Of a DNA stretch of 40,888 bases, positions 3,862 through 40,444 are shown one piece after another. The DNA is from Perkinsus chesapeaki ATCC PRA-425 (taxonomy: Eukaryota; Protista; Perkinsozoa), in the NCBI GenBank assembly GCA_013115145.1, contig JAAPAO010000308.1:1-40888 (forward strand). The letters are read 5' to 3'. The notes beneath the pieces were generated by a model. It searched no databases. It saw nothing but the letters and a program-made list of their open reading frames with translations, and had not been told where the DNA came from. Numbering within the stretch: the first letter of the stretch is position 1; each line of letters starts with the position of its first letter. Position numbers and translations under genes: made by a program.

Positions 3862-3883
3862 GTTAAACGGTTTAACTTAAACT
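3862..3883. repeat. 22-bp direct-inverted-direct scar, inferred 8-mer GTTAAACC (1 mismatch)
   Basis: gttaaac-g-gtttaa-c-ttaaac(t); the last base is T instead of C. Confidence 0.75.
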
Positions 3884-3949
3884 ACCATTGTCTATAACCA
3901 ATCCTGGCATAAGAACCCAGGAGGTGCGTTCAATTTCGCGCGCTTAGGG

Positions 3950-4940
3950 AAATTCGTATTTCGGGTAACTGGTCCGATATCCATTGGAGTGACACAAGGC
4001 AGATACTAGATATCACATGGGAAACCTTCAGCCCGCACGCCAAAGTGCGTAGATTCTCAAACACAGTCGTACATGTGAACTCCAGAGAGGAGAGTGAGCA
4101 ACAGAAACTGATGCGCGAGGGCGAGCGAACACCTCCTGAGGTGGACCAGTCGCACTGTGTGTAAACACACGTAGCAAGCCAATTTCATCTCTTGACATAC
4201 TTACAGCCTCTTGATTCTAATCTCGGCGGCAAGCTAGCAGTAGCGTGCTTCCAGCACGCCAGCCCTGGTAACGGTCGGTTCTATACTACCTGGCAAAAGA
4301 ACATACTAACAGTTATTGTCGAACTTGAGAATCCCATGGCGAGAGTTGAAATTCTAACGGAGAAGCAGCTCTTTCCGTTTCAAGGGCGTGCGCTCATATT
4401 TGACCGGAAAAAATTTCCAAGGCGAAGCTGACATTCCAAAGTGCGAACTTGATGTACAAAAGGAGTAGATATGAAGTACAAGGCGATTCATGACGAACTG
4501 ATAAACGAAAAATATGAAATTATATTCTTGTAAATAGTAAACCTTGCTCCGCATCCCAATCAGGAAATCCGAATGTCTTCCTATCAATTGGTATGTCATT
4601 TAGTGACATAGTGACATGGATTTAGTGACAGGGTCTGGACAAGCCATATCATAACTGGTGCAGCCGCGACTTAAAAGGTATCATACACCGGCCCACTAAG
4701 CTGAAGTCCCGGTTATGGTGAGTTCTACCATAACCTCAATGTCATGAGTACAGCCATTGCCAACGGTATCGACATGTAGATTATCGTTGGTGGATGGATG
4801 TGGCAAAGAAGCAACGTTATCCGCTTGGCCGCGCGGGAGACACGCCCAATATTTTTTATCATGTCGCTCGCCACGAGCATTTTCCAAGGAGATGCTTATC
4901 GAGCGCCTTGACCTGTTCCAGGACGCTTTAATGCTTAGCC
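3950..4940 (+). pseudogene. Possible decayed non-LTR retrotransposon ORF1/gag-like relic
   Basis: Broken protein-like frames (EIRISGNWSD..., LTVIVELENPMARVEILTEKQLFPFQGRALIFDR) precede a degenerate CX2CX4HX4C-like knuckle YSHCQRYRHVDYRW at ~4747-4790. There are many stops and frameshifts; the family call is inference. Confidence 0.25.
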
Positions 4941-5432
4941 CCAGGTTTCGCGTGTTCCGCTTATTTCATCAGTTCGTTCAAGAGACTGGAAACCTAAAGC
5001 TGGTTATTGTACTGGTGTTTGCAAAGTTTACTTAACGATCCGCGTATCACCTAAAATTGGGGAGGCTTCTCTTGTAGGTGTGCAACTGTTGCTCCACGCA
5101 TCTCGCTAAATGAAAGACAATTCATGTTACAAAGTCGCTCTAGGTTGCTAATATTAGCCCTTAATGAGGTTAGTCGACTTGCACTGTTACGCACTTCTCT
5201 GCGCGTTGTTGACCAGTATGGCCTCGGGCGCCGCCCTAAGAACTGACTCAAGATGGGATGGCTGGAAGATATGCCAATCTCCGATAGTATCGGGGTAGAG
5301 TCACTAGCAGCAGAGTGTGATTGCGTAACCCTGGTCGAGATAAAATTTAATTCGAACTTGAAAGTCTAATGCGGAGATATCAGAATATGAGACGCTTGGG
5401 ATTGAACAGGTACATTATCCGATTATCCATGG

Positions 5433-5454
5433 TGCATATAATATGCAGCATATT
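5433..5454. repeat. 22-bp scar, inferred 8-mer TGCATATT (perfect)
   Basis: tgcatat-a-atatgc-a-gcatatt. Confidence 0.9.
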
Positions 5455-5609
5455 ATATCGTCCTTTTGGTGGGCATTTGTACCACTCGCTAGCTATCAAC
5501 CAATCTTAGAAAAGTTGCCAAATTCGTCTATTCTCCCAACAATGGGTTAAACAAATGGCTAATCCCAGTCATAACACCAACGTATCTTCTCCCATATTTC
5601 TGTGTTCAG

Positions 5610-6104
5610 ATGGTCATGTTTCAGGTGAGAAAGGGCACAACCAATACATCGTGCCGATTGGACCCTGGTGAGACATCTGACCATTTTTATGTTTCAAGAG
5701 ATAAATCAGTAGAAAATGGTGACTGGTACACGTTTGTGCTTTGGACAAGCAGAAGCGAGTACATCGCGATCTGGTAGTAGCTTCAATTAAATCACATGTT
5801 ATTTTACCATGGCAATCTTAGGTTATATGACAACGGTACGATGGAACTTTCTGTTAAGATGCAGCATGAAAGGACTCAAGGGCTTACCAGTGCCATTTAT
5901 AAACACTTCTCAGACAAGATTCCATTCAATTTGAAGATGATGAAGGGACTGACTAACACACTTACGAGATCCGATCTAAAATGTGATGAAGTCCTCGATG
6001 TGCTGATGGTCGGAAAAACTGACCCATTTTGGGTTACAAAATTCCTGAGTGACAATAAAGATGCCATTATTGAGAAGTTTGAAGAATGGAGGAATATGAG
6101 CTAG
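5610..6104 (+). CDS. Hypothetical lineage-specific protein, two exons visible; the 5' end may extend further
   Basis: Exon 5610-5773 and a 48-nt GT-AG intron at 5774-5821 splice in frame into the listed ORF (EYIAIW|LYDNGTMEL). The C-terminus resembles the ORF at 21201-21521. Confidence 0.5.
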
Positions 6105-6771
6105 GTTGTCTTGACGACTATTTATGAGGACCAGAATTTATTTTCGTCATGAGCATGTTGTCGACCCTATGAATGTGTATGTTATGATGTTTGTGTTATC
6201 GGTCATGGTACTGAGTCACAAGTCCCTTCTAATGATTATATGAGCGTTTGTCTAGGATACGTTCGTGCTTTCATGAAAGCTACGCTGCCTCAAAATGATT
6301 GCCTCCTTAGCTTACTGGTCACTTCACGCAGTGAACAATAGGCTGACAACTACAGCGTATCGTGATACTCAATTCTTCATGGATATATATCTGATACGTG
6401 AAATTACTATTCTGTTGAGCATCATTCATGTTGCGTGACTCCTAGATAGCAACCCTCATCTGTATTGTGAGTTTCGCATTATAAGCATACCATATTTCGG
6501 GACTGATAAGCCCCTTTTGAATGGAGGCATGCCCTGTTGAGGAAGGACTGGGGGTAACTCAGTTGAAAGGCTTTGTACAGAGTGGATCCAGCCCTCCTGG
6601 GGCACACCGGTTCACAAGTATCTTCACAATGGAATTAAAAATAAGAGAAGGGATGCTCACTATGACGATTTGGCATCATTCGAAGGGCAATAAGTTATCC
6701 ACAATACCATCCTTCGCTATTAACAAAACCTCCTTCATCTGTGATAAGTAATCCTAGAGTGTTATATTATA

Positions 6772-7745
6772 ATGTCCAGAGTAAACACCCGACAGGAATT
6801 ATATCCGACTAATGATGACCAAGTATTAAACACGATAGTAAAATACTGTAAATCACATGGCAAGACGTATCAAGACGGACCAACGTCAAACTCGAATGGG
6901 AACGATAGTAGAATTGATAAGGTTTTGGAAAAGTTAGATGCTCTGATGGACGGACGACAACCATCGGTCAGTGTTAGGGACCAGGATCTGAAAATAGTAG
7001 ACACAAACTTGGAAGAGTTGGGACGACTTGAAGGACATATAATACCCGAAATAATGAAAATGCAAAGGGGGATATTGACTGAGCTTCAGGAGAATAAACA
7101 AACTAAAGCAGGCCTGCAGTGGAGATTGCATGCATTGGAGGCACGTCTTAAGTCAAAGGACAATATAATCAGAGAACTGAGTGATAAAGTGAAGAGCTTG
7201 AGTGATGGAAGGGACTTGGCTATCATGAAAATGAGGAAGCAAGTGTTGGACTTGCAACATGAACTCGGAAAAACGGGGAACGACAAGGTAAAAAAAGAAC
7301 CTTCATCTTGCATCTGAATCATATGTTCTGAAATATACCGATTGAACATCTTCTTTTGCTTCTCAGACTTCATTCGTAGATGGCGACCACATAGAAGATT
7401 GTATCAAGACCCTAGACGAGTAAGTTAGGCGTCAGTAGGCGGCTATTGTCGTTCATGCAAGTCAACACAAAGAACGCTGATCATTCTTCATATGATTCTC
7501 ATATGAATCATGTTATGATATATCTGTGGTTCGAACGACTGAGTTAAGTATTATGCTCGAAGCATGCGATCGAGCATCGCAACCCCCAGCCGATTGTAGT
7601 ATGTCGTGCTGTCTCAAGGCTGATGGATCTCGCATCGGTACCTGCGGCCGAGATGACAGATGCTAGACTTGAACGTATCCGTGAAAGAAGCAAGGAGTTG
7701 AAGAAGGAACTGAAGTCTCTTTACCCGACACTAGTGAGCCCTTAA
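6772..7745 (+). CDS. Hypothetical coiled-coil protein, three exons
   Basis: The 181-aa ORF has heptad-like helical sequence. GT-AG splicing after NDK continues in frame (TSFVDGDHIEDCIKTLD|ELMDLASVP...KSLYPTLVSP*). Confidence 0.55.
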
Positions 7746-7813
7746 GCATCGTTTTCATCAGGTCACCCGTCTCATAAGCGCCAACATCTCCATAAATGCG
7801 CATGTCTCATTTA

Positions 7814-7835
7814 TGTTCATCATGAACGGTTCATG
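7814..7835. repeat. 22-bp scar, inferred 8-mer CGTTCATG (1 mismatch, C>T at a CpG)
   Basis: (t)gttcat-c-atgaac-g-gttcatg. Confidence 0.75.
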
Positions 7836-10702
7836 TCGATTGAGCGTTGCGTCTAGTCAAGCTAATGAGCCCCACTCATTTACGGTTCCAAAGCTGACGG
7901 GAACCTGGGAATGCGCATTCATGGAATACGTTCGAGGGGACAACACAACAAAGAAACGGCCATTGGCAGCAATCCACCGAGAAATAATTCTTAACACAAC
8001 GTAAAAAGTAGCGGGGCGGCTAGCAGGATATACCCTGCTAACCAGTATAGAAGTTGAATCATTTTTCACCGATCTACTAGGGGATAATAACAATAGGAAT
8101 ATTATGCAGCGTGGTTTATTCACGCCAAAGGAGTCTCATTGCAAAAGAGAAAATCACTTGACCACACTCCCAATGGCACACAGATCAGTTGATTTGGCCT
8201 TCTGGGCTCGAGTAATCTGAATGTTACTCTAAGGTTCATCAAGGCAGTAAGCAAATACAACCTAAGGACACCAGCATGTGGGTGTGGGCCTCTCACGGCA
8301 CTGGCAAGTTTTCCGGCAGTCTGAACATACCAGACCAGCCAAACTCCTCAAATGTTGTGGAAGATTCTCAATACCAGTACTGGAAAGGAAGATGATGAAG
8401 CAGACGATGGAGCTGGTATACTTGAGCATTATTAGAAGACAGCTAAAATAACAAAACGTCTTGGTTAAGGGTTGCCGTTGAGAAGAGGGGCTTTCTATCC
8501 AAGCACAGTAATAGAATACAGAGTAAGCAAAGATCAAGAGTCAGGTGGCCTGGTCAGGTACAAGACTGTCGCGACGACATATGAATTGTCTCTCCCCAAG
8601 TTTGCCGTAGATTATCTATTAACTGGGATACTACCTATTCTACACCACCTAATTTCCACGGTAGGGATCCTATCCTCACCTCCATATCAAGAGAAGAGAA
8701 AGGTGTACCCAGATGCCTCTATAGAGCTGCGCTCGTCGCCTTAGGTATCCAGACTATCGTGTCACCATCGGTGACTCACCTAGCCCCGGTCTTGCGCCTC
8801 TTCAAACATGCTTTGTTGAAAAAATTCATTTGAGAAAGATAATTAATCTCGGAAGAATCATGATTGATGAATTGGTGAACCACCTGATTGAAACACGTCA
8901 CTTATTGAGGAAGGATATTGCGTTTTCGACGATTTAATGGTTTTCAATGACTTATGTAATTTGCCCTACGATCCAGGTGAAGTCTTGTCACGTCACACTG
9001 GCTACTGAACAAGGCAACCTTCCGTTCGACAGAGGAACTCCTAAGCGTTGCCTATTCAATGGGCCCTATTGTGCATTCCTGGCCCTAGAGTAGGCAAGGA
9101 AAAGAGTGAAGGATACGTATTTGATTCAATTCTCCATGATTATCGGGGCTTGAGAGTGGCATAGCCTTGTAGAATCTCCTTTGGTTCGAGTTTCGTCATC
9201 AGATGCGCATGTTACTAAGGCCGGCTTAGTAAGGCTGCTCCAAGAAGTTCTTGGTCTCCTATCTCCTATGGTCATGTTAAGAATAGAGCTTGTAGAGTGC
9301 AAGTAAATCCGTTTGACATGAATGCATTTCCACGGAAGCGCAAGGTGTAATCCCGAGTAATTCTCTCTCTGGCGCATCACATGATAACGGTCGCGGACCG
9401 AAGCTTCGTATTTTGTAGCAAGCAAGATATATACAGTTTAAGGCATTATCATTCCCTCTTGGGGATAATATGGGTCACCCCATCGTACTCTTCATCATGT
9501 CGATTTAAAATTATTCGGAGGACTATGTATCCTCGACAGTTAATCTCCTCCACCTGAATTCCAGGCACGGGTTACATTCCAGTTATATTCTTTCAGTCCC
9601 CTGAACACTCTCCACCACTAGTGCCCAGAATGGTGGTAGCAGCTCCCTTGGATGTACCCTTGATAGACTTCTTACAATGTTTGGTACTTAATAAGCACCT
9701 AACAACTTTTGCGAAATGGTTATACGCGATCGTAATAACCGCAATAACGGTTATGGATATTAGGTCACCCTTTTTTCTCAGTCTGTCGCTCTTGTGATAC
9801 ATTTAGTGGGGATTGTTTGCTCGTTGCCAGCAGCTTGCCGATTATCAGCTTTCATGGCGTAACTCGAGATTAATATGCAAAGCTCTCGGTCATTTGCCTT
9901 CCCGGTCAGCGAGGACATTGCTGTGCGGGAGGGGCCGTCGAAGTTTGTGGAAAGGCTTTCAACTTTGTTGATAGCCTACTTCTCAACGGTTGTGAGAATT
10001 CCCCAACTCATTTCCTCAAAGCCACGTTGAAACCTTTGGAGTGAGGTGGGTTAGCGACGTTCCCTGCCTTCATCGCCTCGTTGGTGACGCCTGCTCCCTC
10101 CCATTGACCGTTGGGACTTCGTACGGCACTCGACGGGAGCGATCGATGAGCAGCAAAGCAGCTGGCAGGTGTGAGCCAGCACTGCCAGGTGCAGCAGACT
10201 GAAGAAATCTATACTAGCTCATACACCGCCTAGCGGATTTCGCCTCGTAACGATGCGACTATCTCTGGGAAATGAATCGAGACAAAACCGATCAAGCTTC
10301 TCTGCGCACGAAGAAGGGGGATCTCTTCGCAGGGCTGTCCCTATCGCGCAAACTTCGTGTAGATCGCACAAGAAATTATTTTAGTTACTTTAACATTGTT
10401 CGCTGAAAGACCTTCTATGAATAGAAGAGCTACGTGCTCTCATTCTCTTGCTGCCATTGAGGGTTACCCTTCCGAGTAATTTCTAGTGAGGACCTCATAT
10501 TTCCGAAGTCCTTGTGCGCAAAGTTGTTTCCAGCAGGAAAAAGCTGCGTAGCGGCAACACACCGCGGGCACTCAGACAACACACACCACGCTACTGACTG
10601 AAACTCTCGAGCCTTTTTTAACATGGGAGATGAAAGTCGTAGCCTTCTTTAACTCATCCAGGGAAGGTTATTCATTCAGTTATTTGGCGATTATCTGTTA
10701 AA

Positions 10703-11158
10703 ATGCACCGCTTCTGCTGGTTATCAATCGCAGCAGGTTCTTTGTTGAACTGGTCAGTTATAGCCCAGGAAGATGGCTCTCTAGGCGGATCCTACATCCA
10801 TTACTTCGATGAGGACCGTCTCTACTCTCTCCGTTACAGCTTTCTTCAACATGGTGGCATCGCAATAATCACTCTCAACTGTACCAATGAGGTTGACGCT
10901 TTCGGGCCAGATGATTTTCCTAATTCCCCGGGGCCTAGTCCGAAGCCTGGTGTACAAGTTTACAGTATTGGTTTCGATGACCCCAGATACAACGAGATGG
11001 TGAAATATGCTTTAACCTACTGTTGCAGATTTGGCTATACCCGCTATCATCCGGACGACTTCGAGTTTTTATACTACTATCGCCAGAAGCATAATATGAA
11101 AGTAACTTACAAAGGCGGGTTCCTACAGCTTGATGAGGAGCTTCCTCCTCTCAAGTGA
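10703..11158 (+). CDS. Small secreted hypothetical protein (151 aa, intronless)
   Basis: N-terminal hydrophobic signal-like segment (MHRFCWLSIAAGSLLNWSVIA), a clean ATG-TGA ORF and a Tyr-rich mature region. Confidence 0.65.
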   Translation: MHRFCWLSIAAGSLLNWSVIAQEDGSLGGSYIHYFDEDRLYSLRYSFLQHGGIAIITLNCTNEVDAFGPDDFPNSPGPSPKPGVQVYSIGFDDPRYNEMVKYALTYCCRFGYTRYHPDDFEFLYYYRQKHNMKVTYKGGFLQLDEELPPLK

Positions 11159-11471
11159 GGCATAGGCGTGCCCGACTGCAACAGGTTGATACTCGTCAAT
11201 CAGTGCTGATTCTTATTATAGACGCTTCGGCTCCGAGGCTTAGTAGCCGGGCGTCTGCCAATCGACACTGCTGCCTCTATTTCACTATACTGGTGGCATT
11301 ACGCTTTAACCATTTTCCCTCTAATCATTTTCTCTATTATTGTGTTACCAGTCCCCGTGTGGGGTTGCAACTAACAGCTTCGGTCGAACCACAAATGTTA
11401 TTAACAAATTGCTACTAGCAATATACTAGAGCGTTGAACCCGATGGCCAGTGGCACTGGCTCAGTCCATTA

Positions 11472-12376
11472 TCAGGCCTCCGAGTCCTGGCTACTGGCCC
11501 TGGACTGAGGGCCAGTATCATACACGGGAGAACCTCGTATAATGCGAGTCGGACACCATGGTAGCAGCTCACGGTGCACACCGAAACCTTCAACGATATC
11601 GGATCCAACCAACGCAATCAACCCGAGGTCTGCGATGATGATCGAGAATCTCAATTTGAGATGACCTTGCCACTGGCATTGCACTTTGTGAGCTGCTACC
11701 GCATCCTATATCATATCATCCAAGGGATTCTGGATCCGTTGAAACGCGATGTCGCACTTGTCAATATAAAAGTGAATTGGATTCCCTTTGAAACACGGAT
11801 TATTGAGAAGATATAAGTAATGAAGATATCACGTCGGAAAGGTGCATGCAAATCACCATAATATCCATCTCTGCATGAGCATCACGCACTGGCCTAGTAA
11901 GGCCGAAGTAGAACCTAGCCGCAGCTACGAGATCCTTCACCACGTTACCAGTGATATAAGGTAGAGTTAAAGCAACGAGCTGGTACGAATCGTTAATATC
12001 GGGTGGGGATACGAACGGTATCTGGAAGCCAAAGCGATTGCCAAGCACTATTTCACCAGTGACATGCCACTTGGCAACCACAGAAGACCAGGAAGCTAGC
12101 GCCCGGGCCAAAACCTGTGAAACCCTGGGAACCTTCGACGTCTGTGCCTTGTTGCTCCTATGTGACACATCGCGGTACTTACTGAGAGGCTTGAGGGGGA
12201 GTACTTGACACAGGTTACTTGTTCTGATGAGATAATCACCATTCTTTTCTCCACTAGTCTGCGAACGAATTGCTGCTTTAGTTATTGTAGAAAAATGGAG
12301 CTCTTTCGTTCTAATAGTCACAGCTTTTTTGCTTGCTTTATGCTCTAACTTTTTACCTCAGACTGGATACACCCAT
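11472..12376 (-). pseudogene. Hypothetical multi-exon gene or decayed gene of unknown function
   Basis: ATG at 12376 and a GT-AG intron lead into a 170-codon open frame. The downstream protein-like frame (GNPIHFYIDKCD...) contains an internal TAG. Confidence 0.3.
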
Positions 12377-13098
12377 GGCTCTCAAAATTCCTAATGACGT
12401 CCCCAGACGTGCCTCAGAACAACACGCTGGAGCTTTCAAGGCGTTCTGAGAACAGACCGTTCTCAGACCACGCAGGGCGTTCCCAATCACGGCTTTATTA
12501 TTCACAGGCTTCACACGGTTTAGCTCGAATTCGTAGCGCGGTCGGTAGGTTCGCCTTGATTTCGAGCTACTATGGTGTTGCCTTAACGCTTCAATCGTTC
12601 CCTAATTCGTTGTGGTCTGACTAGTTCCCTTACATGGTTTCGAACTCTTAAGGTTACGACATTACACTTTGTAAAATGGACATTCGATTAGACTGCTCGT
12701 GCATGGCAAGGTCGCATGACACTGATAACTCATACGAGGGCCCCTATCACATACAGTGCGAAAATCCTTCAATGGATAGCAACTTCACACTATACTCACT
12801 GTATCTTGTACTGATGTATAGCAGTGTGCACTTGAACCTTGTGTAGAACGTAGGGTATTTCTATCATCCATATTAGTTCAATTTCACCACCGTGGAGATA
12901 TACGGACGGATGTTACTAGCCTCCATTTTTCGGCAGTGAGGGCTTACCAACGGCAAACCTTCATGCTACTGCCGTTTGATACACGTGCACGGATCTTATA
13001 GTGCATCCTTACAAGTACGCACCTTTTCCGGAAGCGTTTACTAAAATCACTCTGGACATTTCATGCCATGCTTTCTTCAGCGGAGATTTGGACTAGTT

Positions 13099-13120
13099 CC
13101 AATGACTCATTGGCAATGAG
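13099..13120. repeat. 22-bp scar, inferred 8-mer CCAATGAG (perfect)
   Basis: ccaatga-c-tcattg-g-caatgag, followed by a further ttccaatgag copy. Confidence 0.9.
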
Positions 13121-13259
13121 TTCCAATGAGCTGGCCGTCGCGTCGATGTGGAATGGTTTCCCGAGACGTGGATCGAAATCACTATGGAACGCAAATCATT
13201 GAAGAAATAAAAGCAACACAAATGTCATCTCGGCGAGATGCGTGCAACTCACCATGTGC

Positions 13260-14397
13260 CTAGCGCTCATTGCCGACTAGCGAGATAATGTAACTGATGA
13301 CATTTGCACGTTGAGATGAAAATTGATGATGATGCTTACATGAACAGCTGAATTATATCAATATAGAGGGAAATAGCAGCGAAGCAGTAATCATCCAAGG
13401 AGAAGCTGAATCTAGTGTGTTTACCACCAGCTATCAATTGAGTATCAAATACCAAGTACATCGAGAATATGAGAGCACCGATACCTGATGAGAGATTAGT
13501 AAGCAAACATCGTATGTGAGGTAGCTCACCAGCGTAGACTTTATGGAGGATGGGTGTGGTGCCAAAGAAAAGGAACATGAGACCAAACAGAGCCAGTACC
13601 AGGGTTGCCACGAAGAGATATGGGCCCATACCTGAGGGATGCCGATATGGTGCCAAGGAGACGAAAGAAGAGGAGACATCACCAGTAAAGTCGTGCTTGG
13701 TTTGGAAGGCATATGCTGTTAAACCCATAACGACTATGGCAACGATTCCCACAGCCAGGAGAATCTGATCAACACATGACGTGGAGTGGTCGGATGGAGC
13801 CGTACTGAGTTGATCTCATAGCGTGAAGTGATGATGCCAACCATGAAGCCCTCGGCTAGGGTAAAGATCGTTAGTACTATGTAGTTGGTAGGATAACTGA
13901 CGACAGCCGCTATTATGCGATAAAGCAAGAACAGGGCATACTTCCTCATTATGGACGGAGCACACATTATAGCTATCATAATGCCAATTGTTATAAACAC
14001 GCTTAGATACACCAGGGCTACTGTTTTAGGGCCCATAAAGTGCTCAGGATACCTGACGATAGAGTAGGCATGATGGCTTCGGCGTTAAAGCCTTACAGTG
14101 CAAATGGCGTCGCAATAGCAGCTGTCAATATGAGCTGCAATGATAGTATACTGTACACCTAATAAAACTGCTAGAATGCTTGCTCATTTGGTTATTCGAG
14201 TACTTTTTTGATGAAGTTATGTCTAACGTAGGTCGGTATACCTTCGACAATCTCATCACTTGGATAGAATTGTGTATCTTCGTAACCTATCATTTGCGTG
14301 TCTCTTATACAGTGTCGAGTCTACCTCTGCCAGCTTCAATATCATAGCTAGCTCTTCCTACTGCTGCTGCTGATGATGATGCGTTATTGCGTGACAT
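13260..14397 (-). CDS. Bax inhibitor-1 / TMBIM (Lifeguard-like) multi-pass membrane protein
   Basis: Spliced translation has VRHNFIKKVYSILSLQL, AYAFQTKHDFTG, YLVFDTQLIAGG and SLDDYCFAAISLYIDIIQLF. Short GT-AG introns; stop TAG at 13260. Confidence 0.88.
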
Positions 14398-15129
14398 TAA
14401 TAAGTCAATCTCTGAGAAACCTATACCGACTCTTCCCATATCTCCCTACAATTAACTGATAGCACACGCTAATAACGATCATAAGGGGTTCGCTCATTAA
14501 TGTCAGATAGTGTTCGGAAGACCTACCAGCATCCCCAGCTCACATAGGTGCCCCATTAAGCCGGTTGTAGTGCGACAAGCAATTGGGTGGTAGTCATTGC
14601 GTAGTATTCAGTGAAAATCTACTCAACGATTGCGGAACACTCAACGAGGATACCAATTCGCGTTGGAGGTTCAACTGCGCAGTAATATAATCGCGCCGCC
14701 CAGATAACCGTATTGACTGTAGTGATGACTAAAAGCCATATTTTGAGGTGGGTCAATATTCTTCATGGAGTAGTTTAACCAAAGTCTTCAATTATTATAT
14801 AATAGGCAGGTAGACGTGCTGCCAACCTCTCTCCAATCAATTACGTTGTCATGGTTCTACGATTATGTTCTCTCCTCAAGTCTCACAGATTTATCACTAT
14901 AGGTCCCTTAACTGACTGCCAGTAATAGTAGCGTTAGGGCGGCAGCAGGCTAATGCCAACCTCCGACAGACGTTATGCTGTCGCAAGTGTATAGTTATTC
15001 AATCTTGCGCTCTTGGGCGTTCTTGGATCTCCTCAGTTCCCTTCACGTCCACCAAATCTATAAGCGAGGGAAGGTTTTGTCGGTATGGGTTCATTTGGTA
15101 ACGGAAGAGAATGGTCATGGATACATCAT

Positions 15130-16530: not shown

Positions 16531-16789
16531 TACCAAATACTCTTGAGTTCGTACGTTAATCTTCGAACACGTATCCCAAGTGGAGCTGGCTCACTTGCCC
16601 GCCGCCCGCCCATCCAAAGGTGAATATGAAACTCATTTTTAGGGCCGCCGCCGCCCGGAACATTTCTCCTTATCGTGCAATATGCACAGATTCGCGATAG
16701 TTGTACTGGCAGTTTATATTCGATATTATCATCTCGAACAGTTGGTTTGATCTAGAGCACTCATTTTCAATTTACAGTGGCACTCTTGG

Positions 16790-20460: not shown

Positions 20461-20998
20461 CAAGTTAACATGACTTGTTGGGTTAGCTAGTGACATGTAA
20501 CTTCACAATCGCTACTGTGCCTATGAGACATCGTTTTACATCGCTAAGTATCTACTTACTGTAGACCTTACTATTGGATATCGAAGTCATGCACACACAC
20601 TCAACGAGGCTTGCAAGACATATCTTGTATATTTGCTCAACGTACTTTTATACGAGGTAAACATATCTAACCAAAGAGGAACCTCACCACCTCTTGCGAG
20701 TATTCCCGACCTCTGAATGCAGGATACCAATGGATGCTCGCATAACTGAACCTCTGTGACGAAGGCTCTGTTCGAACCGTGCCAATAAATCACTATTTGC
20801 CATGGGAAACAAACCAGCGCAGATCGCAACGAAAATGCGAGATATTCCGATTGTGAAAATAATTGTTGGTAACAACGAACCACGAATAATGCGATGCAAT
20901 GTCATTTAAAGAAGAAAGTATTCATGTCGATGTCGCGAATGGGAAATTAGTTTTCGCGCGGTTGCACCTCCTTCAGCCGGTTCAACTATTCCTGCAGG

Positions 20999-26490: not shown

Positions 26491-26591
26491 CTTCTGGAGG
26501 AGCGAAGTTCCCACTGACCATGTTATCGATTACTAATAACACAACAATCAGTCTGAATAGGATACGGAGAAATTGTGTGTGACATGTCGGC

Positions 26592-29500
26592 TCAGGCTTT
26601 CCGATAATCAACGCATGAGTTGCATTTGCAATGGTCGTCTGAGGAGCCACACCATCCACCTGAGCTGGCAATTAGCAGCTGAATAGCCTCCCAGTCGTAC
26701 CCGGACTGCAACATGGGGCGGCACTTTTCGGGTTACATTCCGTGGGGCTGACATGAAAACCGTTCAGCGATATAAAGGAAAAAGCCTTACCTTCTACCGG
26801 AGGGATCGGCCAATTGAGGGCCACACCGCATGTCGTCGCGCCATCTTGGGAGGGAGGCAACGGAGCTGGCCGGCAATGCTCTGGGTTGAGATGGTTTCCT
26901 GAGATTGCTTGACATGTTTATGACTAGCTTCTTGTACTCACAGTCTTATTCCATTTTCATATGCCCATGCCAGAGCCCTGTCGAAATTAAGTCGATTTGT
27001 TTGTTGCTGCTTCCGGATATAATCACATGCCTGAGGAGATTACCTGGAGGAAGTGAACGCGGCGCGGGGGGCGTGCAGTGAAGCCCAAGTATGTCACGTC
27101 ACGCTAGGCTGTCGCACGGCTCGTGGTTGGAGCGCTCATTGCTGGAAACTCGAGCGGATGAGTTGTCAAAAGTTGGCCACTTTCCCACATTCCGCTCAAA
27201 GGCTCAATAGACAACGCGAAAACTGCATACGAAGGATTTTCAGTATCCTCAATCTTATGGGTTGTGCATGCGTACATCTGACAGCAGGTGCTGTGACCGG
27301 CCCTTGCAGAAAGCTTACCCGCAGTTGGTATTCAGACGGAAACATGTAAGGATACCTTTGGCGATTCAGGTCAGCATACCTGCCGTACAGTAAAGGGTTG
27401 TTCAGCGGGCTAAATCCTCACCAAGGTATCCAAGCATCTTCAACTCGGGCAGTTCGGCTGCTTTGAGCATCATCCCAGCAGCACACTCTGATCTGAGAGA
27501 CGCTGCTTCCTTATCAAGTGTCAATGCTCACCCCACAGGCCCTCCACACGTCAGCCATGGACGGATTCTTAGCAAGGGCGATGGCGATGCCTAGTTAACA
27601 CAAGGCTGAGGGGAGCTTCATCAATCTACGCGACCTGCGTTTATCATCTTCGCTTCTTTCTATTATTCCACCGTCAGAAAACGACAGCTGCTTTAGAAGA
27701 TCGCTCTCCGCTGGCATCTGTCGACTCCATGTGATTCGATCATTCGTCGTTTAGTAACTCACAAAGAAGCTCATGTGTGCGCCCCTTGTTGGATGGTCCA
27801 TCATCCAGTGCCCTTTGGTTCTAACGGTAATCATAAGCATTGTCAGTGGCCTCAAAACCGCTCACCGGGCTGGCAAACGTGCTCCTGATATCGGATGCTT
27901 TTGCATGTTATTTCTATCAAATATATTCGGGAAGGTGAGGTCAGCCATGTCCGCTCCTGAGGTAGGCCAGTAGTCCATGATGTAGGAGTTTCAACGTTAA
28001 CTTCTCCATGCGAAGTTCATTGCTAAAAATCTGGTCGGTAGGGCGACTGGGTACCGTGTATCTTTCGGTTGGCAGTACTTGAAGGGTGCCACCTGCTCCC
28101 CCGCTGGCATCTAATAAGGTACAACTTTATTCGAATTTTAAGTTTACATAATGATGATCCAAATGATACTAAGTATGTGGAGGCAGCGCTCGCTAACACA
28201 GCTGTATTGATCTTGCATTGATCTACCACAGCTGTATACCAGCGCTGTATTGATCTTTGTTGTAGTAGCGTTCGCCTCATTAGCTATATGGATTGATCGA
28301 CGAGAGACGGAGACGTATTTATCTCCGTGGTCTTTATCCATCACGCTATAATGCTGTATCAACAACAAATATGCCCGTGTTGTGTGGTAGTCTATATTCG
28401 ACCAAAGAGCCAGTACCCGATCGAACACACATTATCGCCCGATTAGTTCAGCTGGATAGAATGTCTGCCTACGGAGCAGATGGTCGTAGGTTCGAATCCT
28501 GCATCGGGTATTTTAACCAGCAAAAATAGTCCCATCAAACACGCGATATCCCCACCTCATCCATGTCCCCATGAATGAACAAAGTATTGTCATCCGGCTC
28601 TCCGAATGCCTCCACATATTTCTCAAACAGAAACCCTCGTGTGAAGGTCTCCAATGCGTATCTAATTGAATAGTGTACATGACTCCAACTTCAACTCCAC
28701 CGCAAAGACCAACCAAGTGGCGTCTCAGGTGGCGTCAACTTTACTTGCCTGTCCTCGGGGCGACCATGCATCATGCCATCTACCCTTTGTACAGCGGCAT
28801 CATCCAAAACACTATAAAGTATCTTATTGCGAAACTTTTCAAACCTATTCAAGCCCTGGTAGCTCAGCAGCTCAGCTGTGAACCATCGGTACCTCTTAGA
28901 TCCGAGGGCCGACCCGAGCAACAGAGGCTTCCGCCACTTTTTGAACGCCCTTGTTGATTCCACAATAACGAATACCTACGAGAGCCTTTTTTACCATGGA
29001 ACAGTGATGCGGCTACATCAACAACAGAGTGGAGCTCGTGGAAGCGAACTTCGAGAATGTCAAGTTCGTAAGCAAAGGGCAGAAGGTCGACGATGCGCGC
29101 TGGTGAGGGCCGTTTGCCCGACATATACCTGAATGACCGTTTCGTCTACCAGCTTCACGACACTCTACGGATTGCTCTGGCAGTCCCATTGCAGTTTTCG
29201 CGTTGGTGGTCTGTCGGATACTGTAGCTTCCATGGGGGGCTCCATGGCTAACCTCTGTTGTAGCAAGGACACATACCTTTTCACCCACACCTATACGAAA
29301 TGCCATAGATCTCCCTCAAATGCAGATTGTGCACCGACTTCATTATCAACGTGTCTTCGGTCTACCAAGGCATCCCAATTGAAGTCGCTCCCTGCTGCTC
29401 GCTCCAACTTCTCAAACTCAGGATTGACTTCCCATTCGCCTGTCATTCTTCTGGACGACCCTCTGGAGAGCTCCGGCCTACCAAATTCGTTTAGGTCCAC

Positions 29501-30470
29501 CTGGCCGGCGTCCATCCACATCAGGTCCCCTTTGTCTAGGATGCTCTCTGCCGTCACGGGCGACCCCTCTGACAGAAGACACCTCGTCGAGGGCAAGCCT
29601 ATCTGCATCACACCTGCTGTTCTATCGCAGGGCTGACGCTTTTCAAGCTTGTTAACGGTGGCACGGGCATCCTCTAATTCACGGGACTTGGCCTTCAGCT
29701 CAAGTTTTAGTTTGTCGATTCCATCCTACAAAGAAAGCATCGAAGTATCTGGACACAAAGCTGTCCCAGTAATTGCCTCTGAAGTCGGCGGCGTCGACGG
29801 TGATCCGCCACGAGGCCCAGTCGGCTGACGAAGGTCTCGAAGAAGTTGTTCCAACTTGGCCAGTATCTGCGTTGTCTAATTATTGGCGCATGGGATAGAT
29901 AATTGTTAATGCATTAATCTTCCATTGACCTGGACTCCAGGTCCTGGAGTGGAAAAAAAGTAACGCATGTCTGTTTTTTCACAGAGAACGTTTCCTCTAT
30001 CTATGTACCAGTAACATATTTTCTATCGAACTTTAAACTACATCTCGGCTGAGTAACATATTTTCTATCAAACTTTGAACTACATCTCGGCTGAGTAACA
30101 TATTTTCTATCAAACTTTACAGTAGACCTCCGCACTAGTAAAATACTTCCTATCAAGCTTGCTATATCTCCAAGCTAAGAACGCTATCTGCACCAGTTCT
30201 CTGAACACATTCCCATATGACTGGGAGAAATCGTGGCCATAGACGGCAATGCTTGATGAGAGTTGTTATCACATCATCAGTGCTCGGTTGGAGAAACGCT
30301 TCATCGTTATTCCCCATGGATCCCCTCAAGGGTAGCATAATTATATACAGTGCCGCTGGTATGACAGCAAGAAGCAGGCAAGTGCTCACACCAACCGAAC
30401 GCCGCTGCGCTTCCTTCGTGGCTGAGCCAGGAGTCTGAGGGTATCTTAGCTCCAACCGTGCATGATACAA
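26592..30470 (-). CDS. GT17 (beta-1,4-GlcNAc transferase-like) with C-terminal Cys-rich hevein/chitin-binding-like domain; 5' end uncertain
   Basis: Exons give RIVDLLPFAYELDILEVRFHEL, ESTRAFKKWRKPLLL, LFIHGDMDE|MP, WIPWYADLNRQRYPYMFP, then WRDDMRCGPQLADPSG-SPTECNPKSAAPCCSPGGWCGSSDDHCKCNSCVDYRKA*. A signal-anchor-like stretch (TCLLLAVIPAALYIIMLPL) lies near 30330-30400. Confidence 0.72.
28437..28510 (+). tRNA. tRNA-Arg (ACG)
   Basis: Acceptor GCCCGAT/ATCGGGT plus discriminator A; D-arm GTTC/GAAT; anticodon arm TCTGC-CTACGGA-GCAGA; T-arm GTAGG-TTCGAAT-CCTGC. Confidence 0.95.
28511..28514 (+). terminator. Probable Pol III terminator of the tRNA
   Basis: A TTTT run follows immediately after the discriminator base. 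Confidence 0.55.
29928..29949. repeat. 22-bp scar, inferred 8-mer ACCTGGAG (perfect)
   Basis: acctgga-c-tccagg-t-cctggag. Confidence 0.9.
30010..30160. repeat. 42-bp minisatellite, about 3.5 copies
   Basis: The unit agtaacatattttctatcaaactttgaactacatctcggctg starts at 30010, 30052 and 30094, with a diverged partial copy at 30137. Confidence 0.9.
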
Positions 30471-30717
30471 GGCACCTCATCGTATCGGGAGTGGCCTCCA
30501 CAACTGATTCCGCTTGCGGTTGATGAGGCTAGACTGCTCGTCCTGCTTCGTGTAGAGCTCGTGATACCCAAAGGCATCGCGAATGATTTGTACAACAACA
30601 AACGGTTTCTTTTCGACTGTCGGCTCCTTTTGCCGAAAAAGCGTCGCGTTCACTAAGGGAGCGAGGTGAAGAGAAACATAGGGAACTCCTTGGCCTAGCT
30701 GGATGGCTTCTACATTC

Positions 30718-30966
30718 GACATCCGTGCATTTCGAATTCATGTATCGATATTTTAGACTAGCCAGCCGCACAACACTTCCCGGTGAGGGTTTCACATAAT
30801 TTATTCCATACAAATGGTCATAGAGGAACGTCAGTAGTTCCCAGGATGAATGGATTTGATATCTGTAACCGTGAAAGGATTTCATCTGCCTTCGCATAAG
30901 AAACTCATTTCTATCCTGGAGGGATATATTCTATAAGGCGAGATGATTTACGGATTCGACAGGCTT
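30718..30966. repeat. 249-bp direct repeat, copy 1
   Basis: Matches 34237-34485 with three substitutions seen by eye. Confidence 0.95.
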
Positions 30967-30981
30967 GAAGCCTGAGGCTTC
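30960..30981. repeat. 22-bp scar, inferred 8-mer CAGGCTTC (perfect)
   Basis: caggctt-g-aagcct-g-aggcttc; the paralogous position in repeat copy 2 reads a single CAGGCTTC. Confidence 0.92.
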
Positions 30982-31492
30982 AGAGAACTGGTGATTTGTA
31001 CGACAAACCGAAAAAACACTAAGGTGCCGCATTCCTGCAAAACTTACAATTATCAGCCAATTATAGGAAACTTAGTGCGCATGGCAATCAGTCCCAATAT
31101 CCAAATAACCCAGAATCTCAGTGACATACTCCACTCGCTAATTAATAAACTCAAGCAGCAGAAAGGTCCAAAGACTCGATGATAGAGACGGTCCCATTTA
31201 TAGCATAGCACGGAAACTAGGACTTCATCTGGCCTCTTACAGAAAAATGTTCCTAGAGGCCAAATAAGTAATACTAATGGGAAGACACAGCAAGAATTTA
31301 TCTACAAGAAATGTGGCCAACATCAAATAGATCCTTGTGGAAACGTTTTGTGTTCCTCAATGACTCCCTGAGCTTGGCGCTAGGACGAAATCTAAAGTCC
31401 ATATGTTGGATAGCAATACAAAAATACGACACTTCACCTCGACTTACAGAGAGTGACCCTGAGTGGACCTATACATTGTTAGTTAGTAGAAG

Positions 31493-33196
31493 CTAGAAAA
31501 GGACAGGACCAGCACGCCAAATATCCCAACGATGATTCCAGGATTTACCCCAGAAAAAGATCCTTATCCAGGCGTTGAAGTTGACACCAGAGAGGAACTC
31601 CCACTTATTGGCAAGGTTCTCGACAGTGTTACCAGTGACATCAACCGATACACCAGCCCCTGCGAGCCATAGGGATATGTCAGTGCCGATCCTTCCGTAA
31701 GCGGTGATGTCGTTGTGGGGCCTCGCAGTAACACTGAAGTAAGCTGATATTCTCCAGTTAATGATGCTTCCTAATACAGGGACATTGACGTTGAAGCTGA
31801 CCGCGATATCCACTGAACCGGAGAAGGTGCGCAAGTCTGCCTGCAAGAGATTTTCACCGGAACCTTCGCCTACAATACAAACGTCAATAGAGAGACTGAA
31901 TCCTGCACCAAGTTGGAATACGACAACGCAGCCACTGGCCTCAAACCTTAGATCAAGGACCTTACCTTCAGAGCCCTTTGTTAAGGTTACAGATAAAAAT
32001 AATGATGCTGTTCTATCTGGCTTGTTAACATCAACAAAGGCGATACCAGCCTCAACAGTAAGCGAGGTCTGGATGCTACCATCATATGGTGATTCTGATA
32101 CAGTTGTAGCAACCAAGGCATGAAGACAAAATTTTGCATCGCGTCCTCTCTTGGTTTTGCAGCCGCGAGGAAACTGGAAGTTGACGGATAGAAGGAGATC
32201 TCTTCTTTTGCCAGCGTGAAAGAAGTAATCAGCAGCGGAACCCTTCTCGATAGTGAAGTACTCGATACCCTTGAACCCTCGTCTGAGACGCCGGCCTTTA
32301 GGCATCCAGTCGTAATCCTCATCATTCTCGAAGAATTCTCGCGCTTGCTCGGGGATGACATCGACTTCCATGTGCTTGGTATCCACATAGGGGGCTTTCA
32401 TATCTCCAGGGGGAGCAGTAGACTTAGAGCGAGAGGTATCGATATCATAAGTATAATACATCTCGTTCATAGCCTCATCAACATTAACACTATCATCGAG
32501 AGCTTCCCAGCTATCGAAGGTAGTCTCCTGGAAAATCTCACCAGCTTGGTAGGTGTTCAGACTGATGAGTTTAGATGGCCTGTCAGCGAGGTAGTCGATA
32601 TACAGGATCCATACATTAGGCACAAGACCAGTCTGATAAAGTGCTGTATAGTTGGTGCCATCATTGGGGTTTACACCCTCAGGACCATAACGAACCCACT
32701 TAATAAAGAGTTGGAAATCGATTATCTCATCGCCTTCATTGATCCATCCATCTTCCTCAAGCTTCTCAGAGTTATGAGCAGCAGCGGCGAGCATACGCTC
32801 AGTGCCGTGCGTCTCCTCCATAACAGTGCGAGCAGTGTTCATGAACATTTGGTCAACCCTATGGACCTTCGGAGTGTCAACATGCATCATATACTGATAG
32901 GGGCGGCTTGGGGAGGCCTCGACACTAACTTGACCATCCTTAGTAACGATAACATCTTCTCTTGTTGTGAGACTGCCGTCCTCCATACCAGGCATAGTAA
33001 GACCATAAGTCTCTCTCGCCATGGATTTACCACAAGGTGCTGGGTTATCATGAGAGTCAACAAGGTTCTTGTTACAATACTTAACGGTAGTGGTCTGGAA
33101 ATGCGCGTTAGTAGCCTTGAAAGCAACAACGACTTGCAGCAGCACTCCGGGTAAGACGAGCAACAAAGGAAATATATTGTAGGTCATGAAGGACAC
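31493..33196 (-). CDS. Secreted 567-aa hypothetical protein, intronless
   Basis: Uninterrupted ORF with a signal peptide (FPLLLVLPGVLLQVVVA), a central multibasic GRRLRRG site and a beta-strand-like C-terminal half with an aromatic tail. Confidence 0.85.
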   Translation of the reverse strand: MSFMTYNIFPLLLVLPGVLLQVVVAFKATNAHFQTTTVKYCNKNLVDSHDNPAPCGKSMARETYGLTMPGMEDGSLTTREDVIVTKDGQVSVEASPSRPYQYMMHVDTPKVHRVDQMFMNTARTVMEETHGTERMLAAAAHNSEKLEEDGWINEGDEIIDFQLFIKWVRYGPEGVNPNDGTNYTALYQTGLVPNVWILYIDYLADRPSKLISLNTYQAGEIFQETTFDSWEALDDSVNVDEAMNEMYYTYDIDTSRSKSTAPPGDMKAPYVDTKHMEVDVIPEQAREFFENDEDYDWMPKGRRLRRGFKGIEYFTIEKGSAADYFFHAGKRRDLLLSVNFQFPRGCKTKRGRDAKFCLHALVATTVSESPYDGSIQTSLTVEAGIAFVDVNKPDRTASLFLSVTLTKGSEGKVLDLRFEASGCVVVFQLGAGFSLSIDVCIVGEGSGENLLQADLRTFSGSVDIAVSFNVNVPVLGSIINWRISAYFSVTARPHNDITAYGRIGTDISLWLAGAGVSVDVTGNTVENLANKWEFLSGVNFNAWIRIFFWGKSWNHRWDIWRAGPVLF

Positions 33197-34236
33197 TATC
33201 GGGAAAAGTAGGAATCTTGAACCTGAGACGTTACTTACGACTTATCGCATTTTTATCCGAACTTCTGCTTCGTTCGGGCACCTTACTAGGCTTCCCTTCT
33301 CCCCTACACGCATACTCATTATCCTGTGTGGTATTCCTTGGGAGCCTTAGTGTCTGGCTAATGTTACCCCTTCATATGTAGCGCCCATCACACTGTGAAG
33401 AGGAGCTTAATCAATAATTTTATCATCCAATCCTTCCGCATTTCCGACTTGGTTCATCGTCGGGGTTCCCACCTGGTACCGTCCGGCTTACGGCTTTACC
33501 GAAACCTCTACACTGGGCCGTGAAGCCTCCGCACGCGTAGTGCGCAGGAGCCCTCGATTTCGTACGTGCAAGAAGATATCGACAGCTGACAAGGGAGAGT
33601 TACTTGCCGAGGTCAATGGTGTTTGTTTTCTATATTCTGCATAGTGATATTGCATACGCAGAACGCTGACAAAGTATTTGGCCCAAGATAACCCGTGGAC
33701 GATTGACAACAAGCGTTACGATTCCATCTTACTGGCTCGTTTGAGCTAAAACGTACTGTTACAGGGCGAATTGCACCACCTGGTGTAAGGCTTGGGTTTT
33801 CCTATCTACAATGTTCAAAAACCTTTGGCCACCATCACTCTGCCTGATGCCGGACCCTGTATGTGGAACTTTCCATCGTCCGTCATGGAAGTGGTTAAAG
33901 CCGGGTTCCGAAATATAGTGCCTTCTAGCCCGGACGTTCCTCTGCACGTCTCCTGCGCCGATCGATATCTTGATGCTCGGCTAGCAATGGCCCGACTAAC
34001 GACAATGCCGTGACAGTATCGCTGCCTCCCCCAGCGCTTTGCAGCAGACTGGTTCCCTTGCCGGGCAGCAAGGCCCGTAAAGCCTTCAGGCGGCAGGGGC
34101 CGCTGAAAGCGCGTGCCAACTACTACGTGTGCAGCAGGAGGAGGAGCGCATCGTAACTAAGGAGGCAGCTGACGCCCATTGCCACGAGTCGAGTTGGGCG
34201 CACCGTTAGTTCCTCTCATGGTGCGCATACTCCATG

Positions 34237-34485
34237 GACATCCGTGCATTTCGAATTCATGTATCGATATTTTAGACTAGCCAGCCGCACAACACTTCCC
34301 GGTGAGGGTTTCACATAATTTATTCCATACAAATGGTCATAGAGGAACGTCAGTAGTTCCCAGGAGGAATGGATTTGATATCTGTAACCGTGAAAGGATT
34401 CCATCTGCCTTCGCATAAGAAACTCATTTCTATCCTGGAGGGATATATTCTATAAGGCGAGATGATTTACGGACTCGACAGGCTT
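34237..34485. repeat. 249-bp direct repeat, copy 2
   Basis: See copy 1. Confidence 0.95.
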
Positions 34486-34680
34486 CGGGTATGCATTCCA
34501 TAATAATGGAAGGCAACTGCCTCCTGCTTACAGTGGTTTAAGTTTTATTGTCGCGCTTGAACCACTCTCACCTTAGACGGTTAATTAACAAGCCAACATC
34601 AGGAATAACTACGTAAGAAATACATATTATTAAGGAGGAACAGTAAAGTACGTGAAGGTGGTGCTGGTGGTGGTGGTCTA

Positions 34681-39111
<4,431 letters not shown>

Positions 39112-39690
39112 TTACAATAACTACCCCTGCCGTACAGTATGAAAGGTATGCCCGCTGGATTCATGTAGGTTGATCGATTACTAGTTCGATGCATTACTCA
39201 GTCTGGTGAGTGAACAATCGACTCGTGAGAAGGCCTCCACGCTCATTCCCTCTCCACCTGCCCCGATGGGTACAAAAGTCCGATGAGTGGCGGCGTTACA
39301 AGATAACACAAGCGGAATACAATTATGTTCCGTGAACTTTGAATATCATGTTCCACATCAGTTGCTCCAAGAGCGAAGAGAAATTCCAAGGGCAGTCAGT
39401 TAGTACAGACCACCTGCGCAGCACATCACGCTTCTCAACAGTGAGTTTCTTGCACTTGCACGAAAGCTAACGCATGCGTAGTGATAAGGTAGGTATGCCA
39501 CCATACATGGCATAGTATTAATACATAGAGATGGGCACCGTAACGGCCACGGTACGGCACGGTTTAAGGGATCCGTGGCCCAGTACGGAACGACTTGAGG
39601 TATTGCATATTACGACGCGTCACGCGCGTCATAGTGGAAAAGCATTATCTTCGAAAGGCAAACAGCAAAACGCACGAGTCCGAAGGGCAG

Positions 39691-39712
39691 CCAGGGAGTC
39701 CCTGGCAGGGAC
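39691..39712. repeat. 22-bp scar, inferred 8-mer CCAGGGAC (perfect)
   Basis: ccaggga-g-tccctg-g-cagggac. Confidence 0.9.
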
Positions 39713-39815
39713 AGTAGCCTATCTCGTTTGGGATAGCGTAGTCGTAGCACAGCAGTTATGGAGTAGTACACCGTGCACTAGATCACCCACAATCGGTCGA
39801 ATGATCAACCTTAAC

Positions 39816-39835
39816 AGACCCACTGGGTGACCCAG
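39816..39835. repeat. Trimmed scar, inferred 8-mer AGACCCAG
   Basis: agaccca-c-tgggt-gacccag; it overlaps the next scar by 2 bp. Confidence 0.7.
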
Positions 39836-39855
39836 CCTGGCCCAGGCTGCCTGGG
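39834..39855. repeat. 22-bp scar, inferred 8-mer AGCCTGGG (perfect)
   Basis: agcctgg-c-ccaggc-t-gcctggg. Confidence 0.9.
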
Positions 39856-40183
39856 TGGCACGAGTAAAAATGTGTGCCATCCTGGGCGAAGGCTTCGGGT
39901 GTGGTGGGCGGAGCAGGAGTTTGTTGTAGTTGCTCACAAAAGAGGTTGAGACGCATATTACAACCGTGGTCATGATCATTGCTGAGAATAAACAGTGTGT
40001 GTTGAGGCTACGCTTATGGTTGGACTGACCAGGTCAGCGGAGGAGAGTTGGTGATAGCTGCGATGAAAGGGAGAGCAGTTGCAACAGTTTAAGATTCTAG
40101 TGTAGTCTAGAAACTTCTCCCGTAGTAATGCTAGGTTTGCGGTATAGTATGTGCCGCACACACTATAATGGTATAAGGTATAA

Positions 40184-40216
40184 GGTCAATGGCGCACACA
40201 GTGTGCGCCATTGACC
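40184..40216. repeat. Perfect 33-bp palindrome with a single-base centre
   Basis: ggtcaatggcgcacac-a-gtgtgcgccattgacc. Confidence 0.95.
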
Positions 40217-40293
40217 CGCACGTGTGCTAGCACGCGTGCTCATTGTGTGGTCGGAGCGGCTCCGCCGGGGTGACCCTCGCGGGGTCCGGATCG

Positions 40294-40332
40294 AGACGTC
40301 GATTGATACTATGATAGTATCAATCGACGTCT
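40294..40332. repeat. Perfect 39-bp palindrome with a single-base centre
   Basis: agacgtcgattgatactat-g-atagtatcaatcgacgtct. Confidence 0.95.
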
Positions 40333-40422
40333 GATAGTGTTAGTATCCAGGCAGGCAATACAGCTTCGAGGTACAGTTGCTTGAGACCTCGGAGACAAGT
40401 AATGAAGCGTAGGTGAGGCTAA

Positions 40423-40444
40423 CTTCGCAGTGAGAAGTTCTCAC
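40423..40444. repeat. 22-bp scar, inferred 8-mer CTTCTCAC (1 mismatch)
   Basis: cttc(g)ca-g-tgagaa-g-ttctcac. Confidence 0.75.

Follow-up and report, generated by a model that had tools for sequence, protein, structure and literature searches.

The window analysed here, 40,888 nt of contig JAAPAO010000308.1 of the protist Perkinsus chesapeaki ATCC PRA-425 (positions 1 to 40,888), carries repeated copies of a 22-bp scar in which an 8-mer, N1-8, appears in direct, inverted and again direct orientation. The scar is probably the donor-site footprint of a cut-and-paste transposon that makes an 8-bp target site duplication (TSD) and is excised by hAT-type chemistry. The rule behind it reduces to N1-7 + revcomp(N1-8) + N2-8, a structure that is its own reverse complement. 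An earlier note on this DNA had given the rule in a longer form, which holds at all twelve sites that it listed.

For counting, the rule was generalised to a k-mer (length 3k-2), sites were scored with a minimum-edit metric and chance expectation was taken from 200 block shuffles. The pattern is confirmed as real, with an abundance far above chance: at k=8 the window holds 6, 13, 21 and 33 sites with no more than 0, 1, 2 and 3 edits, respectively, compared with 0, 0.005, 0.26 and 4.2 in the shuffles. A direct check reproduced the six perfect sites of the earlier note, its sites with one mismatch (3862, 7814 and 40423) and with two (8761 and 9215), and its trimmed site, which is a 20-bp form reading N1-7, c8, c7-c4, c1, N2-8, where c denotes the complement of the numbered base. 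Absent from its list were four further sites with one edit (3137, 9050, 11641 and 40741) and four with two (3403, 11408, 11446 and 40265). All are collected in Table 1.

The length of the repeated unit is fixed. Perfect sites at k=6, 7 or 9-13 were absent from the window, and at k=5 there were 3 where 0.6 were expected. Scanning over k against shuffled controls, as the earlier note had proposed, gave an enrichment peak solely at k=8 in the window and in the sampled Perkinsus loci, and every locus that was scanned had sites at k=8 only. The centres of the palindromes are equally specific. Perfect palindromes with a 1-nt centre and arms of at least 7 nt number 27 in the window, compared with 2.55 expected, while those with spacers of 0, 2, 4 or 6 nt are all at expectation. 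The base at the centre of the palindromes is the complement of the outermost TSD base, and the excess is confined to odd-centred ones, which supports the hAT-type hairpin reading that the note had put forward.

The scars are a genus-wide feature of Perkinsus, since k=8 sites occur across loci of three species. Beyond the window, the loci sampled were the regions around homologs of its DUF6740 and acyl-CoA-ligase genes. Scars with 0, 1 and 2 edits number 20, 20 and 26 in 79 kb of P. olseni, 12, 14 and 9 in 44 kb of P. marinus ATCC 50983, and 6, 9 and 9 in the 62 kb of P. chesapeaki as a whole, which makes 38 perfect scars in 185 kb. No scar with one edit or fewer was found in 151 kb from two dinoflagellates or in 50 kb of E. 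coli: at up to 0, 1 and 2 edits the sites number 0, 0 and 2 in 110.6 kb of Polarella, 0, 0 and 1 in 40.3 kb of Durusdinium, and 0, 0 and 0 in the bacterial control. An assembly or sequencing artefact was considered and rejected, given that several projects have yielded assemblies of the three species in which the scars are present, and that contigs from two sequencing studies of P. chesapeaki also carry them. One such contig (record 4 of run X1) matches window positions 37030-40412 with a single difference, at 38994 and outside the scars, and another (record 7 of run X5) matches 34889-40299 with none. The scars within these two intervals are therefore not products of assembly, because contigs of two separate studies carry them.

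The scars tend to lie between and upstream of genes, with recurrent hotspots at 39691-39855 and 40143-40347. The earlier note had placed none in an exon that could be defined, and in the annotated part of the window (1-13007) all scars do fall outside both called genes. Long open frames contain 0 of 67 scars where 10.5 would be expected; this shortage is real, though the argument is in part circular, as a frame is broken by any +14 insertion. Where scars overlap open frames, targeted Pfam scans of those frames revealed no domain running across any scar.

Comparison of alleles and paralogs indicates that each scar arises in one step. The earlier note had set a single +14-bp change against a stepwise origin, and in five comparisons the scar differs from an intact 8-mer by the single change. 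One of three tandem paralogous upstream regions in P. marinus has a scar (L003:3184) where a second has the single 8-mer CGAATAGA, the two being exactly 14 bp apart; the third paralog has diverged at this spot and carries no information on origin. Between two P. olseni haplotypes that are about 90% identical (L007 and L005), a 5.1-kb block has 12 indels of at least 6 bp. Three of these measure exactly 14 bp and are the scars at L007:5365, 6814 and 7657, for which the L005 haplotype has the single 8-mer. The fifth case is in the window at 40424, inside a multi-copy repeat, where one X1 contig is short by exactly 14 bp and leaves CTTCTCAC. Two of the three allele states envisaged in the earlier note, the single 8-mer and the +14-bp scar, are thus seen; the element-filled allele did not turn up in unambiguous form.

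These observations can be accommodated by the following mechanism, in which we infer the hairpin intermediate, the repair pathway and, from the footprint alone, a hAT-superfamily transposase as the enzyme. Insertion of the transposon would duplicate the 8-bp target (N1-8). At excision, the transposase would nick one base inside each flank, and the freed 3'-OH would attack the opposite strand to give covalently closed flank hairpins with a single unpaired tip base, the left one reading N1-7, c8, c7..c1 and the right one c8..c2, N1, N2..N8. Host nucleases would then cut the hairpins open well away from the tip (8 to about 29 nt) and leave 3' tails. Next to the duplex, the left tail would read revcomp(N1-8) and the right tail N1-8, so that the two are perfectly complementary over 8 nt. 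Annealing of the tails, trimming of flaps and filling of gaps would yield N1-7 + revcomp(N1-8) + N2-8, a net gain of 14 bp. All 14 constraints of the rule are accounted for if each flank hairpin carries a single tip base complementary to the outermost TSD base, if it is opened 8 nt or more from that tip, and if both tails then pair over the inverted TSD. The middle 8 nt of the joint are the overlap of both unfolded tails; the complementary overlap is thus the full 8 nt, not the 6-bp core through which the earlier note had supposed annealing. Since this geometry matches the published Ac/Ds footprints, the process appears to work like hAT excision followed by microhomology annealing.

Tails joined without annealing would instead leave two odd-centred palindromes back to back, and a second class of footprint has this form. 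Around a single 8-mer, the left palindrome has the complement of N8 at its centre and the right one that of N1, and their arms measure 8-29 nt. About 8-10 such joints are present in 162.7 kb of Perkinsus loci, which were scanned for N1-7 + left palindromic (P) tract of a nt + right P-tract of b nt + N2-8. The same scan found 37 perfect 22-mers and only 6 classical 16-bp footprints (2.6 expected), with 0-3 matches in each of the intermediate P-tract classes; joints whose P-tracts total less than 8 nt are rare. These proportions bear out the earlier note's proposal that microhomology joining dominates. In the window, a row of palindromes is explained by two tandem-palindrome events, at 40143-40216 and 40294-40347. 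The second of these adjoins the multi-copy repeat that starts near 40348, and its left hairpin would have been opened about 20 nt from the tip. A 42-bp insertion in P. marinus (L003:9716-9757, N=TACAGGGC), seen by comparison with two paralogs, can be parsed as a left P-tract of about 22 nt, CTGG and a right P-tract of 8 nt, which is again a tandem-palindrome footprint.

Once formed, the scars persist and decay. One scar with a single edit is common to both P. olseni haplotypes (L007:3959 = L005:1101), and scars with 0, 1 and 2 edits occur in near-equal numbers, which together imply prolonged accumulation and decay; the near-equal classes fit a steady input combined with mutational decay. Assuming steady input, we multiplied the density of perfect scars by 22 to obtain, per base, how often scars form relative to point mutations. 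This estimate of our own comes to about 0.003 for the window and 0.011 for the P. marinus locus with the highest density, so that new scars would form at a per-base frequency of roughly 0.3-1% of that of point substitutions. If values are assumed for the mutation rate and for the number of scars in the genome, about 2e-4 events per genome per generation would sustain the density. The heavy hAT turnover suggested in the earlier note is therefore not required by the rate estimate, for which modest, long-lived activity suffices.

Several results weigh against attribution to a hAT element. A Pfam scan of the 150 open reading frames (ORFs) of at least 72 aa in the window found no transposase domain, in agreement with the earlier note, which had seen no transposase there. 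No element in place, with an 8-bp TSD and terminal inverted repeats (TIRs), stood above chance in the window, and no unambiguous filled allele was found at the loci examined. The target sequence resembles the hAT (Ac-type) consensus nTnnnnAn only weakly: in a symmetrised logo of 36 distinct perfect sites, position 2 is T at 0.38, C at 0.32 and G at 0.11, with position 7 as its mirror, giving T/C at position 2, A/G at position 7 and a depletion of G at position 2 (chi-square by hand on the counts, p about 0.01).

Individual candidates for an element were followed up. In a search for identical 7-10-mers flanking terminal inverted repeats, the best TSD/TIR pair in the window, 23747/24211 with CAGGTTG ends, was not significant. 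The best filled-allele candidate is L005:14996-15367, which has CTCTCAA[T/C] flanks inside a scar and no convincing TIRs; over L005:14981-15382 both P-tracts are present 372 bp apart and the other haplotype has the single 8-mer; this may be captured filler or an element within an old scar. Two further P. olseni insertions, L005:5625-6021 and L007:17036-17147, had no TSD/TIR structure and were rejected as filled sites, as was L007:12238, which likewise had none and is an assembly gap. Separately, a fragment of a DDE_3 (Tc1/mariner-type) transposase was noted at P. olseni L005:6710-7070, in a haplotype-specific 3-kb region rich in perfect scars. It belongs to a superfamily other than the one that the scars imply.

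Among alternative explanations, an enzyme outside the hAT superfamily (Mutator-like, Merlin/IS1595-like, Novosib or undescribed) might generate 8-bp TSDs and use the same hairpin-and-annealing route, which we consider unlikely. Mutator-like elements (MULEs) likewise pass through flank hairpins and are able to generate 8-bp TSDs, but the 43+43-nt hairpin of the MULE Muta1 has no offset, and most Muta1 excisions are precise (PMC5499845). Merlin TSDs are 8-9 bp and Merlin-related ORFs are present in P. marinus (PMC8101967), but the copies there have no detectable TIRs or TSDs. The lack of a hAT gene among the 150 ORFs of the window would suit such an enzyme. The lack of any excess of even-centred palindromes would not, and in the cited literature a centre offset by one base is described solely for Ac/Ds-type hAT footprints (PMC5873905, PMC1978519).

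Somewhat less likely again is a domesticated or host-controlled, hairpin-forming hAT-like excisase that revisits intergenic and promoter DNA, so that the scars would not be the debris of selfish hopping. If this were true, the cell would be unable to open hairpins near the tip and would depend on annealing over at least 8 nt. Palindromes would be written steadily into regulatory DNA, which would make the process a major source of mutation peculiar to this lineage. More doubtful still is a domesticated nuclease that forms hairpins as part of a programmed or recurrent process, comparable to V(D)J recombination or ciliate DNA elimination. That the scars far outnumber visible elements, cluster between and upstream of genes and recur at the two hotspots speaks for it. 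But a continually hopping mobile element explains many scars from few copies, the target 8-mers are almost without sequence signal, and the alternative allele is a plain single 8-mer; moreover, the scars are inherited, decay by point mutation and are common to diverged haplotypes. Least probable of all is a replication or repair error independent of any transposon (a template switch to the opposite strand and back, by a quasi-palindrome or fold-back synthesis), which could produce a direct-inverted-direct arrangement in one step and would account for no element being visible at any site, but which leaves unexplained the fixed length (zero perfect sites at k=7 and k=9, compared with 6 in the window and 37 in 162.7 kb at k=8), the one-base offsets at both junctions, the paired palindromes whose centres complement N8 and N1, and the absence from the dinoflagellate and bacterial controls.

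Table 1. Scars, tandem-palindrome footprints and genes. Coordinates without a prefix are window positions; L-prefixed coordinates refer to other Perkinsus loci.
Feature	Position	8-mer (N)	Remarks
Perfect 22-bp scar	5433..5454	TGCATATT	right palindrome extended to 11-1-11 by local ATAT, hence match at 5440 not independent
Perfect 22-bp scar	13099..13120	CCAATGAG	another CCAATGAG 2 bp downstream
Perfect 22-bp scar	29928..29949	ACCTGGAG	
Perfect 22-bp scar	30960..30981	CAGGCTTC	exactly at end of 249-bp direct repeat
Perfect 22-bp scar	39691..39712	CCAGGGAC	upstream of minus-strand AAA-ATPase gene
Trimmed 20-bp variant	39816..39835	AGACCCAG	left P-tract 5 nt, right 1 nt; 2-bp overlap with 39834 scar
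Perfect 22-bp scar	39834..39855	AGCCTGGG	
22-bp scar, 1 edit	3137..3158		
22-bp scar, 1 edit	3862..3883		
22-bp scar, 1 edit	7814..7835		
22-bp scar, 1 edit	9050..9071		
22-bp scar, 1 edit	11641..11662		
22-bp scar, 1 edit	40423..40444	CTTCTCAC (underlying)	within multi-copy repeat
22-bp scar, 1 edit	40741..40762		within multi-copy repeat
22-bp scar, 2 edits	3403..3424		
22-bp scar, 2 edits	8761..8782		
22-bp scar, 2 edits	9215..9236		
22-bp scar, 2 edits	11408..11429		overlapping match at 11401 probably same structure
22-bp scar, 2 edits	11446..11467		
22-bp scar, 2 edits	40265..40286		
Tandem-palindrome footprint	40143..40216	about TATGTGCG	left 12-1-12 (40143-40167), right 16-1-16 (40184-40216), 16 nt between
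Tandem-palindrome footprint	40294..40347	ATACTATC	19-1-19 palindrome, then 8-nt right P-tract and N2-8, 1 mismatch each
Tandem-palindrome footprint	L003:12749		arms 8 and 21
Tandem-palindrome footprint	L005:9128		arms 29 and 12
Tandem-palindrome footprint	L003:18210		
Tandem-palindrome footprint	L004:6670		
Tandem-palindrome footprint	L005:15285		
Acyl-CoA-ligase gene	670-3007		minus strand
Small gene	7060-7745		
Bax-inhibitor, MgsA-like and glycosyltransferase-17 fragments	within window		
tRNA	28437-28510		
DUF6740 gene	31493-33196		minus strand; 567-aa ORF
AAA-ATPase gene	about 35.3-39 kb		minus strand

The surroundings of the scars include several repeats. A 249-bp direct repeat, 99% identical between its copies at 30718-30966 and 34237-34485, flanks the DUF6740 gene, and its right boundary coincides to the base with the end of the 8-mer CAGGCTTC. 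The first copy ends in a 22-bp scar, and the second in a single CAGGCTTC followed by unrelated sequence. The second copy was considered as an empty-site control for the 30960 scar; it keeps the single 8-mer, yet it is not a clean control, because homology stops exactly at the 8-mer. The repeat is possibly a transposon-associated duplication, by alternative transposition or filler copying. A 42-bp tandem repeat of about 2.6-3 copies lies at 30010-30135, between the scars at 29928 and 30960.

At the end of the window, a multi-copy repeat (40349-40888, starting near 40348 with CAGGCAGG...) has a contig depth of 800-8600, compared with about 87 elsewhere. Upstream of it, other copies are flanked by different sequence, and variants lack 87-133 bp around 40375-40517. 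The repeat bears two decayed scars, and a Pfam scan of its 90-codon open frame (40617-40886) gave no match. Within an intron of the AAA-ATPase gene, contig depth reaches about 12000 at about 36402-36435 (in 36289-36488), which identifies a short repeat that is very abundant genome-wide. For 35313-37347, run X1 also contains second contigs that are 85-90% identical, with several indels and skipped blocks. They represent a diverged haplotype or a paralog of the AAA-ATPase region, in keeping with a heterozygous or polyploid genome; this second haplotype spans only a stretch without scars.

The AMP-binding ORF of the window is 97% identical to a protein of P. chesapeaki. The DUF6740 ORF has no identical database protein and therefore appears to be unannotated in the P. 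chesapeaki record; its best match, from P. olseni, is 62% identical. In each of the three Perkinsus species the family is arranged in tandem arrays, and the name 'protein arginine methyltransferase 10' is given to members in some sources.

Excision footprints are usually too short and too varied to be recognised in a genome, and the history of cut-and-paste transposition is therefore usually invisible once the element has left. The uniform repair product in Perkinsus makes each past visit readable, so that it can be mapped onto a haplotype or species tree and given an age from how far the scar has decayed. Across the genome, this would document where insertions were targeted and how fast transposition has run in commercially important parasites of shellfish (oysters and clams). 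With every event, intergenic DNA gains 14 bp and a palindrome. Hairpin opening 8-29 nt from the tip, together with joining mostly through 8-nt homology, points to Mre11-type opening followed by microhomology or single-strand annealing over Artemis/Ku-type joining. The mode of repair also bears on genome editing in P. marinus.

Among the closest known systems is Ac/Ds, whose transposase has been placed as cutting at the flanking nucleotide (PMC1978519) and whose footprints contain palindromic insertions centred on the complement of the transposon-adjacent base, with arms of up to 20 nt in yeast (PMC5873905). The same P-nucleotide palindromes and microhomology joints are made by Ac/Ds in yeast, Arabidopsis and Candida (PMC5873905, PMC1978519). 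The experimental footprints were varied, with 28 types among 128 Candida events, whereas in Perkinsus one 22-bp product is dominant and the full 8-nt inverted TSD is used. Unlike the products of those experiments, the Perkinsus scars have accumulated naturally across a genus, and here they are known from footprints alone.

RAG and Transib, whose TSD is 5 bp, nick at the junction itself and so produce even-centred palindromes. Perkinsus differs from these and from MULE-type systems, with their even-centred palindromes and TSDs of 5 bp or 9-10 bp, in having an excess of odd-centred palindromes only and k=8. What it would have in common with V(D)J coding joints, Transib/RAG and MULEs is a closed flank hairpin that is opened by the host to give palindromic additions (PMC5499845). 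For mPing, PMC4561436 likewise describes a duplicated target that supplies microhomology for a stereotyped repair; there, the direct TSD copies anneal and the original site is restored, while in Perkinsus it would be the hairpin-inverted copies that anneal, with a gain of 14 bp. Template-switch (quasi-palindrome) mutations similarly place an inverted copy between direct copies in one step, but they have neither a fixed length nor transposase-type offsets. No description of the present scars was found in the literature searched. The chemistry of hairpin excision is already known; what is new is the dominance of a single 22-bp product, its natural genus-wide accumulation and its use as a record of past transposition.

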